This document shows, piece after piece, positions 20,865-21,239 of a DNA stretch of 64,000 nt (its first letter is position 1; each line of letters opens with the position of its first letter). Under the pieces are notes generated by a model, which did not search any database, was not told where the DNA came from, and was given only the letters and a program-made list of their open reading frames with translations. Origin of the DNA: Zygnema circumcarinatum SAG 698-1b. Lineage: Eukaryota > Plantae > Zygnematophyceae. The stretch covers positions 2,006,297 to 2,070,296 of the forward strand of contig CM074819.1 of NCBI GenBank assembly GCA_037447605.1, in the 5' to 3' direction. A program made the translations under genes and the position numbers.

Positions 20865-21030
20865 ATTCACAAGCGCGCAGTAGTTCCGCTAGGCTTTCTA
20901 TACCTACTGTTTTCCATATAATGCTCACTTTTTTGTGACCAGTGCCCCTCAAGCTTAGTATTTCCTTTACGCCTTGGGGTTTAGCCGCTGTTAGTTCTTC
21001 CCACCATTGCAAGCTACTTTCCGTTGCGTT
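20865..21030 (-). pseudogene. polX: Fragment of a bacterial-type family X DNA polymerase (PolX) helix-hairpin-helix region
   Basis: My translation of a frame missing from the ORF track gives [54 protein letters not shown]. This fits the bacterial PolX pattern as I recall it (L..L...P.GV.E.L...G.G.KK...IWK.LGIES..ELL.AC). It has no start codon and no introns. Confidence 0.72.
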
Positions 21031-21059
21031 GACCAATCCTGACCAAATGCTTGAAGGTC

Positions 21060-21239
21060 AAGTGCGAATGTAGGTAGAGGCTGTTGCGTTCTTAAAAGTT
21101 GTAACCTAGCCTGTTCTAGAAGGTTACAATAAAGATGTGCATCTCCAAGTGTATGTATAAATTTCCCTAACTCTAAACTACATACTTGGGCTATCATCAT
21201 CATAGTAAGTAGCGCATACGAAGCAATGTGGAAAGGAAT
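21060..21239 (-). pseudogene. thyA: C-terminal fragment of a bacterial-type thymidylate synthase
   Basis: [57 protein letters not shown] matches the ThyA motif PFNIASY...GDAHLY.NH.EQ..LQL.R.P.PLP. The conserved Asn is changed to His, the conserved His to Leu, and there is one extra Met. Confidence 0.9.

Follow-up and report, generated by a model that had tools for sequence, protein, structure and literature searches.

DNA that enters the nucleus from organelles is known to be built into chromosomes when breaks are repaired, and the resulting nuclear plastid and nuclear mitochondrial DNA segments (NUPTs and NUMTs) have been reviewed (PMC7037861, PMC12181080). Breaks in plant chromosomes also capture bacterial transferred DNA (T-DNA) together with filler sequence (PMC10923293), and interstitial telomeric sequences are either inserted at repaired breaks or mark them (PMC7215372, PMC5388398). 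Surveys mostly report transferred genes that have survived, and short bacterial-like stretches are often discarded as contamination. Here we describe such a short stretch in the alga Zygnema circumcarinatum SAG 698-1b: a 372-bp insert that combines internal fragments of two bacterial genes, thyA and polX. It lies in a 64,000-nt stretch of contig CM074819.1 (assembly GCA_037447605.1, positions 2,006,297–2,070,296 of the forward strand), which we call the window and whose own coordinates are used throughout. Very probably the insert is a dead-on-arrival integration, in which two unlinked bacterial pieces were end-joined at a chromosomal break and then decayed neutrally. It is a well-documented failed transfer, with a verified location, a preserved empty site, two readable junctions and measurable decay. 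Few term sets were used to search the open-access literature, and they returned no reports of such fragments in algae.

Two bacterial gene fragments in one insert

The minus-strand reading of 20850–21260 contains two homologous stretches in two different frames. Beyond the at most 15 nt between them, these two bacterial pieces make up the entire insert:

20866–21237, minus strand: the whole foreign insert, 372 bp; each border is ambiguous by 2–3 nt (TT or ATT in common with the host site)
21033–21237, minus strand: fragment of ThyA (thymidylate synthase), about residues 176–245 of an enzyme of ∼264 amino acids (aa); frame open but damaged
21018–21032, minus strand: junction between the pieces, at most 15 nt; filler or a diverged start of the PolX piece
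20866–21017, minus strand: fragment of bacterial PolX, codons ∼73–123 of a 571-aa PolX with a PHP domain; contains the second helix-hairpin-helix

The ThyA piece matches positions 176–235 of the 266 in Pfam PF00303 (66.3 bits, E 3.2e-18, cut-off 24.3 bits). It also matches TIGR03284 (78 bits, E 5.6e-22), falling under that model's whole-protein cut-off of 108 because only ∼60 residues are present. Its best match in the PDB is Brucella ThyA (3ix6, E 9e-19), and eukaryotic enzymes score 56–57 bits against 70 for the best. These lower scores and a C-terminal motif that follows the bacterial consensus bear out the original prediction that the piece is a bacterial-type ThyA. The open stretch begins exactly at the host border, stays open for ∼68 codons and includes HTLGDAHLY and LEQARLQL. 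Set against a consensus built from 120 bacterial ThyA fragments, it has gained one codon and lost five, all in frame; given the five-codon deletion, it extends to the ‘QDW’ codons at 21033. Two positions with conservation of 95% or more across those fragments are altered (the substrate-binding Asn of PFNIASY is now His, and the His of SNH is Leu). The segment with the catalytic Cys, which lies ahead of profile position 176, is absent, and the host flank starts immediately upstream.

The PolX piece aligns with positions 75–122 of the 571 in NF006375 (E 1.4e-4) and with Thermus PolX (3au2, E 0.005). An exhaustive HMMER search of 1.84e9 representatives returned 84 matches (best E 3.1e-9); the complete proteins among them align at residues ∼70–125 and are ∼520–625 aa long, the size of bacterial PolX with PHP. 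At the nucleotide level, alignment to the nearest bacterial polX runs from 21017 to 20866 and includes the ‘TGTGAA’ at the host border. The frame is open over ∼56 codons, and the GIGPKK hairpin motif conserved in PolX has become GTGHKK. The polymerase palm and thumb and the PHP exonuclease domain are absent, and PolX homology goes no further than the host border. With ∼25% of ThyA and ∼9% of PolX left, neither catalytic centre among them, and with conserved residues mutated, both pieces are relics rather than active members of their families. The limits of the junction depend on the level of comparison: homology to the nearest polX begins at 21017 in nucleotides and at ∼21024 in protein, and ThyA homology stops at the ‘QDW’ codons.

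Both fragments, with matches far beyond chance, therefore occur at the place where the original prediction, made from the letters of the window, had put them. Two of its details needed correction. The span given as 20865–21239 is 20866–21237, and the insert, which had been called AT-rich, has a GC content of 0.40 and 0.46 in its two pieces, not notable against 0.39 in the flank. The nearest N gaps are where they had been placed, at 20623–20632 and 28605–28614. A tblastx comparison of the whole window with bacterial contigs revealed no further bacterial fragments.

The insert resides in the algal chromosome. The stretch is present in 20 public runs from seven studies, all of one organism. We compared per-run assemblies of four runs from four studies (X1, DNA; X4, X11 and X16, RNA) over 20300–23300, so that the evidence consists of assembled contigs, not raw long reads. 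A 664-nt contig (20834–21497) spans both junctions with 0 differences in X1 and in X4, which comes from another study; in X11 and X16 the insert is held in overlapping contigs. Word depth in X1 is 37.7 for the bridging contig and 36.7, 35.3 and 38.1 for the next contigs rightward, and no gap separates the right flank from a gene whose introns spliced contigs confirm. One could suppose that the culture was not axenic and that reads from its bacteria were assembled into the host scaffold, given that bacteria are common in algal cultures, that the left flank is repeat-rich and that an N gap lies 236 bp away. Yet the same host–insert–host sequence recurs with 0 differences in independent assemblies from all four studies, the insert has the X1 depth of single-copy flanks, its two flanks are adjacent in an empty paralogue (see next section), and its pieces show decay, with no sampled bacterium more than 77% identical. 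Because contigs bridge both junctions, depth is at the level of the flanks and the right flank is continuous with an intron-confirmed gene, a contaminant or assembly chimera is excluded for practical purposes. The checks of junctions and depth suggested alongside the original prediction thus came out in favour of a host location.

The empty paralogous site and the route of insertion

The window contains an inverted segmental duplicate, at ∼83% identity, in which the same site is empty:

10271–10466, minus strand: paralogous empty site; an (AGGG)n tract and a telomere-like array lead directly to the right-flank sequence, beside which lies an N gap (10261–10270)
21238–21273, plus strand: right-hand host flank, immediately adjoining the insert; matches 10306–10271 at 94%
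17767–20100 (insert copy): matches 15962–13206 (paralogue)
20634–20803 (insert copy): matches 10466–10291 (paralogue), 82%
21943–22177 (insert copy): matches 9701–9471 (paralogue)
20737–20865, plus strand: degenerate interstitial telomere-like array of TTTTAGGG type, with a 26-bp higher-order unit in 4.9 copies; abuts the insert

Since nothing interrupts the inverted paralogue at this very point, the foreign sequence was inserted and is not ancestral; the empty site is a paralogous and not an orthologous one. The paralogue reads ...TTTTAATA-TTGTAGGATTTTTGG. The insert copy reads ...TTTTAGTA-TTCACAAG... at its left junction and ...GGAA-TTGTAGGATTTTTGG at its right junction. The ends of the insert and the site have only TT (or ATT) in common, and neither a target-site duplication nor terminal repeats, inverted or direct, are found at 20866 or 21237. 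These features point to end joining. Capture by a transposon, of either Pack or Helitron type, finds none of its marks here: terminal repeats, a target-site duplication and characteristic termini are all missing.

The two arms of the duplication (9471–15962 and 17767–22177) run outward from a spacer that contains N gaps at 15972–16071 and 17279–17288. Each arm carries sugar-transporter gene sequence, arranged head to head, and colinearity is patchy, with some exons in one arm only. A 3455-nt contig from X11 also shows an insert-free junction. Its left 30 nt are identical to the paralogue; across 21238–21467 it differs from the insert copy by 26 mismatches and 14 gap letters, and from there on it is identical to it, spliced exons included. 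It does not match the window's paralogue beyond the N gap. This contig may be an allele or an assembly chimera, may derive from gene conversion, or may show paralogue sequence that a gap conceals.

After insertion the PolX piece evolved neutrally. In a relative-rate test with bacterial polX locus L006 as outgroup and L012 as sister, the fragment branch carries 26 unique nucleotide and 12 unique amino acid changes (9, 5 and 12 at codon positions 1, 2 and 3), and the L012 branch carries seven and none (1, 1 and 5). Changes spread evenly, as on the fragment, are what neutrality produces, and the third-position excess on L012 is the pattern of purifying selection. The fragment has changed at ∼13% of codon positions 1 and 2, an upper bound, as part of the change may be divergence within the donor lineage. 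Because of this decay the insertion is old rather than recent, with an age of the order of the host paralogues' divergence. The insert has no detectable function.

Such an age also bears on a different history, in which the insert is a secondary copy of an older and larger host integrant, or was already present before the duplication and was later lost precisely from the paralogue. A precise deletion through the ATT found at both borders is conceivable in principle, and ∼13% decay is not below the per-lineage divergence of the paralogues (∼8.5%). Against a secondary copy, word depth over the insert equals that of single-copy flanks, so X1 holds no near-identical second copy, and there is none elsewhere in the window; against loss, exact restoration of the site by deletion is less parsimonious than one insertion. 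We regard either version as very unlikely.

The history that we favour would begin in the spacer that separates a sugar-transporter from a glutamine-synthetase-like gene, with a double-strand break at the edge of the interstitial telomere-like array. In resealing this break by its classical or its microhomology-mediated route, end joining would have ligated in, probably in a single event, two short unlinked bacterial chromosomal fragments present in the nucleus. The captured DNA would comprise ∼205 bp from inside thyA and ∼150–160 bp from inside polX, with at most 15 nt between them, and the polX fragment would derive from an uncultured Bacteroidota lineage with intracellular-symbiont-like genomes. 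Neither piece ever became a gene in the alga, and the substitutions and small indels gathered since then are neutral. The core of the original prediction, joint capture of two unlinked bacterial pieces in break repair followed by decay, is thus supported by the empty paralogue, borders of 2–3 nt, the lack of linkage between thyA and polX (see below) and the relative-rate test. The array predates the insertion, as the empty paralogue carries a shorter version of it. With ∼25 telomere-like arrays in the window, the chance that one lies within a few bases of the insert is roughly 1%, which supports, without proving, the array as the fragile site of the break.

Donors of the polX and thyA pieces

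The top representative in the HMMER search, P0001, is only 57% identical to the PolX piece. Local ranking of the relatives of P0001 against the fragment identified the closest proteins, P0095 and P0098–P0105 (571 aa, with HHH_8, HHH_5 and PHP domains), which share 73% aa identity with it over 52 residues; nucleotide identity to the genes at L012–L017 is 77% over ∼150 nt. In a maximum-likelihood tree built from the N-terminal 200 residues of 146 PolX proteins, the piece nests in a 30-member clade of uncultured Bacteroidota (support of 82 in the Shimodaira–Hasegawa-like approximate likelihood ratio test, SH-aLRT), within which finer placement is unsupported. The best matches of both fragments are bacterial and the PolX tree places its piece in a bacterial clade, as the original prediction had anticipated. 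Named relatives of P0001 include metagenome-assembled genomes (MAGs) labelled ‘Bacteroidota bacterium’, a Cytophagales MAG, a Cyclobacteriaceae MAG, Candidatus Amoebophilus sp., Roseivirga and Rapidithrix; among these listed relatives Ca. Amoebophilus sp. is the only genus-level candidate name. Another representative match (P0003/P0086) adjoins a Por_Secre_tail gene of type IX secretion.

The contigs of the PolX clade (L006–L008 and L012–L017; GC 45–47%) share the gene order HtpG, UvrA, ribosomal proteins S6/S18/L9, UDG, ankyrin-repeat, PolX, NAD kinase and RuvC. The ankyrin-repeat gene directly beside polX encodes 508 aa, and the P0001 contigs (L006–L008) carry a gene for a eukaryote-type UCH protease downstream of polX, beside RuvC. 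Ankyrin-repeat and UCH genes are typical of the gene content of obligate intracellular symbionts such as Amoebophilus. The PolX clade accordingly looks like an intracellular symbiont lineage that has no cultured or named member, and the donor may have shared this symbiotic lifestyle. Amoebophilus itself is an obligate intracellular symbiont within the Bacteroidota (PMC8831229). The ‘intimate associate’ named as donor in the original prediction draws indirect support from the ankyrin-repeat and UCH genes on the contigs of the closest PolX relatives. Narrowing the polX donor to this clade provides a concrete lead on bacteria with physical access to the algal nucleus.

The ThyA piece behaves differently from the PolX piece. 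Its best partial-ThyA matches, at 72–75%, are spread over many phyla (e.g., Halothiobacillaceae, Anaerolineae, Nocardioides and Rhodospirillaceae). A search of genome contigs returned five loci at 62–66% (Myxococcota, Gammaproteobacteria and others), which reflect exact-word patterns rather than nearest kin; the same search confirmed no locus for the PolX piece. A degenerate DNA pattern of a ThyA motif found no closer kin in metagenomes, where the best pattern match reaches 82% over only 39 aa, on low-GC contigs with a different C-terminal part. The proposed Bacteroidota origin therefore holds for the PolX piece (tree, 73% aa and 77% nucleotide identity) and not for the ThyA piece, which many phyla match about equally (66–75%). 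The latter is bacterial-type with its phylum open, and a single donor for both is plausible. In three related bacterial contig sets no thyA lies within 10 kb on either side of polX, and therefore the two pieces are not neighbours in those relatives.

Both genes could instead have arrived on a phage, plasmid or giant virus, or in one contiguous donor segment that later suffered an internal deletion. Many phages encode ThyA (844 phage records match by tblastn, the best at 79.5% over 39 aa), and the spacing of at most 15 nt between the pieces is compatible with a deletion. PolX, on the other hand, is nearly absent from phages and plasmids (one weak tblastn match each, at ∼40%). In its relatives it is chromosomal, with the UDG–ankyrin–PolX–NAD kinase order kept and thyA lacking from the surrounding 10 kb. 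At the DNA level, BLAST with the insert and right flank found no plasmid matches and one generic phage thyA match (70%), and IMG/VR holds no relative of either piece. We consider mobile or contiguous delivery of both genes very unlikely. A phage, plasmid or viral origin of the PolX piece in particular was rejected, as it has no close relative in phages, plasmids or IMG/VR; the phage or plasmid source entertained in the original prediction is thus unlikely for this piece.

It is tempting to ask whether many fragments of one symbiont-like Bacteroidota lineage were captured repeatedly at telomere-like arrays. The ankyrin-repeat and UCH genes on the nearest bacterial contigs fit this reading and a lost partner, but we think it unlikely. 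Should further arrays prove to adjoin DNA from this lineage, the genome would preserve traces of an intracellular partner that is lost or still unnoticed, and telomere-like repeats would be preferred entry sites for foreign DNA.

Several points weigh against capture of two bacterial pieces, one of them from a symbiont-like Bacteroidota donor, in the repair of a break at this array. The paralogue has an N gap 36 nt past the empty site, and a precise, microhomology-mediated loss of the insert from this copy, though unlikely, is conceivable. The left flank is low-complexity or telomere-like throughout the 236 bp to the N gap, and contigs reach only ∼32 nt into it, so that linkage to the sugar-transporter exon depends on the assembly and on the colinear order in the paralogue. 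Nucleotide identity for PolX has a ceiling of 77%, which means that sampling has missed the true donor and that its lifestyle is an extrapolation. The ThyA piece is not tied to Bacteroidota, the sole partial ThyA with a Bacteroidota name (Saprospiraceae) being 66% identical. Finally, a single culture strain may lie behind all the runs, and our statements apply to that material rather than to fixation across the species.

Genomic setting and comparison with known systems

The host genes on either side converge on the insert, as originally described, with a sugar-transporter exon on the plus strand and Gln-synt_C exons on the minus strand:

20465–20582, plus strand: sugar-transporter exon (major facilitator superfamily), converging on the insert; PF00083 positions 361–396 at 20470–20580, E 9e-6
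21477–21899, minus strand: last exon and 3′ untranslated region (UTR) of a glutamine-synthetase-like gene, from spliced RNA contigs (X4, X11, X16) and translation
21633–21760, plus strand: degenerate C-strand telomere-like array of CCCTAAA type, inverted relative to the left array
22578–22810 and 22173–22316, minus strand: two Gln-synt_C exons (PF00120 at 22578–22809, E 1.1e-18, and at 22173–22314, E 3.1e-5)

The stop codon of the glutamine-synthetase-like gene would lie at ∼21836–21838. Its introns (21900–22172, 22317–22577 and 22811–23265) read CT..AC on the plus strand and are confirmed by spliced contigs. In RNA contigs from three runs, the sugar-transporter exon (ending at 20582) is spliced to sequence found only at 11249–11278 (minus strand), in the paralogous arm. 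The last exon of this gene was sought near the insert and not found; at least one of its exons is probably hidden in the 10-N gap at 20623–20632, where the assembly is incomplete.

The abundant glutamine-synthetase-like transcript ends near 21477, ∼240 bp from the insert. RNA depth over the insert is ∼4–10% of that in the neighbouring 3′ UTR (16.3 against 168.9 in X4; 6–10 against 143 in X16), and this weak transcription fits read-through from the neighbouring gene. Domestication, whether the host used the insert in a 3′ UTR or terminator or made a small peptide or RNA from it, might be read from this coverage and from the two open frames (∼68 and ∼56 codons). Opposed to it are the position of the abundant transcript's end, the absence of a start-to-stop gene structure and of the catalytic parts, the loss of conserved residues and the even distribution of substitutions over codon positions; moreover, a search of 20000–22200 against Rfam found no family that matches the insert. 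We hold domestication to be highly improbable.

The window is rich in repeats. Its ∼25 telomere-like arrays mix TTAGGG, TTTAGGG and TTTTAGGG units and are sited in introns and spacers (e.g., 34406–34544, 35319–35382, 35885–35962, 43293–44363, 57581–57712, 58094–58207 and 63561–63780). At 34406–34544, (TTAGGG)n and (CCCTAA)n tracts meet head to head in the manner of a telomere-fusion scar. The pair within 35319–35962, of opposite orientations, brackets one exon of a host SNF2-family helicase gene (35372–38970; SNF2-rel_dom, E 1.3e-45) with a C-terminal RING finger (zf-RING). A ‘telomere–fragment–telomere’ module was considered for the insert and rejected here, since the left array and right flank are contiguous in the empty paralogue. 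Purine-rich arrays of (AGGG)n type, 0.6–1 kb long (24057–25000, 10384–11090, 37935–38600 and 49844–50790), cross-match at 70–80% identity and produce long spurious open reading frames. A 63-bp tandem repeat in 5.2 copies, rich in CATG/CATA microsatellites, occupies 20121–20437; its sub-threshold Rfam microRNA matches (mir-297 and others) are low-complexity artefacts.

Bacterial DNA would, on the history that we favour, reach the germline of Zygnema as small fragments pasted in by break repair, a step that precedes any functional gene gain. The insert resembles functional bacterium-to-alga and bacterium-to-plant horizontal gene transfer, with which it shares a bacterial origin and a chromosomal site among host genes. 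It differs in having no complete gene, no introns and no detectable selection; its internal fragments, their different frames and weak read-through transcription set it apart from a functional transferred gene, and it is better described as a failed, raw product of transfer. To the ThyA (PF00303) and PolX (NF006375) families it is related by clear homology to defined segments.

The closest likeness is to NUMTs, NUPTs, nuclear Wolbachia transfers (nuwts) and filler DNA, for all of which capture by end joining at breaks is the established mechanism. As in those systems, short non-host pieces form a mosaic of unlinked fragments at a site that has an empty counterpart, without function and in neutral decay. 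The junctions agree with those of NUMTs, NUPTs and nuwts as well, having 0–3 nt of microhomology and no target-site duplication. Unlike them, the insert does not come from an organelle, a known resident endosymbiont or Agrobacterium, and its polX piece derives from an unsampled member of the Bacteroidota, a kind of donor that our data do not document for the host alga; it is also much smaller than typical Wolbachia transfers. With interstitial telomeres that mark repaired breaks it shares a position against a telomere-like array, but here the array is older than the insert, and its role would be that of a fragile site. The features of break-repair capture that the analysis covered are all present at this locus: foreign sequence at host copy number, an empty site, junctions almost free of homology, a mosaic of unlinked pieces and neutral decay. 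The kind of event is thus already known, and what is new is the combination of an unsampled, symbiont-like Bacteroidota donor, for the polX piece, with an algal host.

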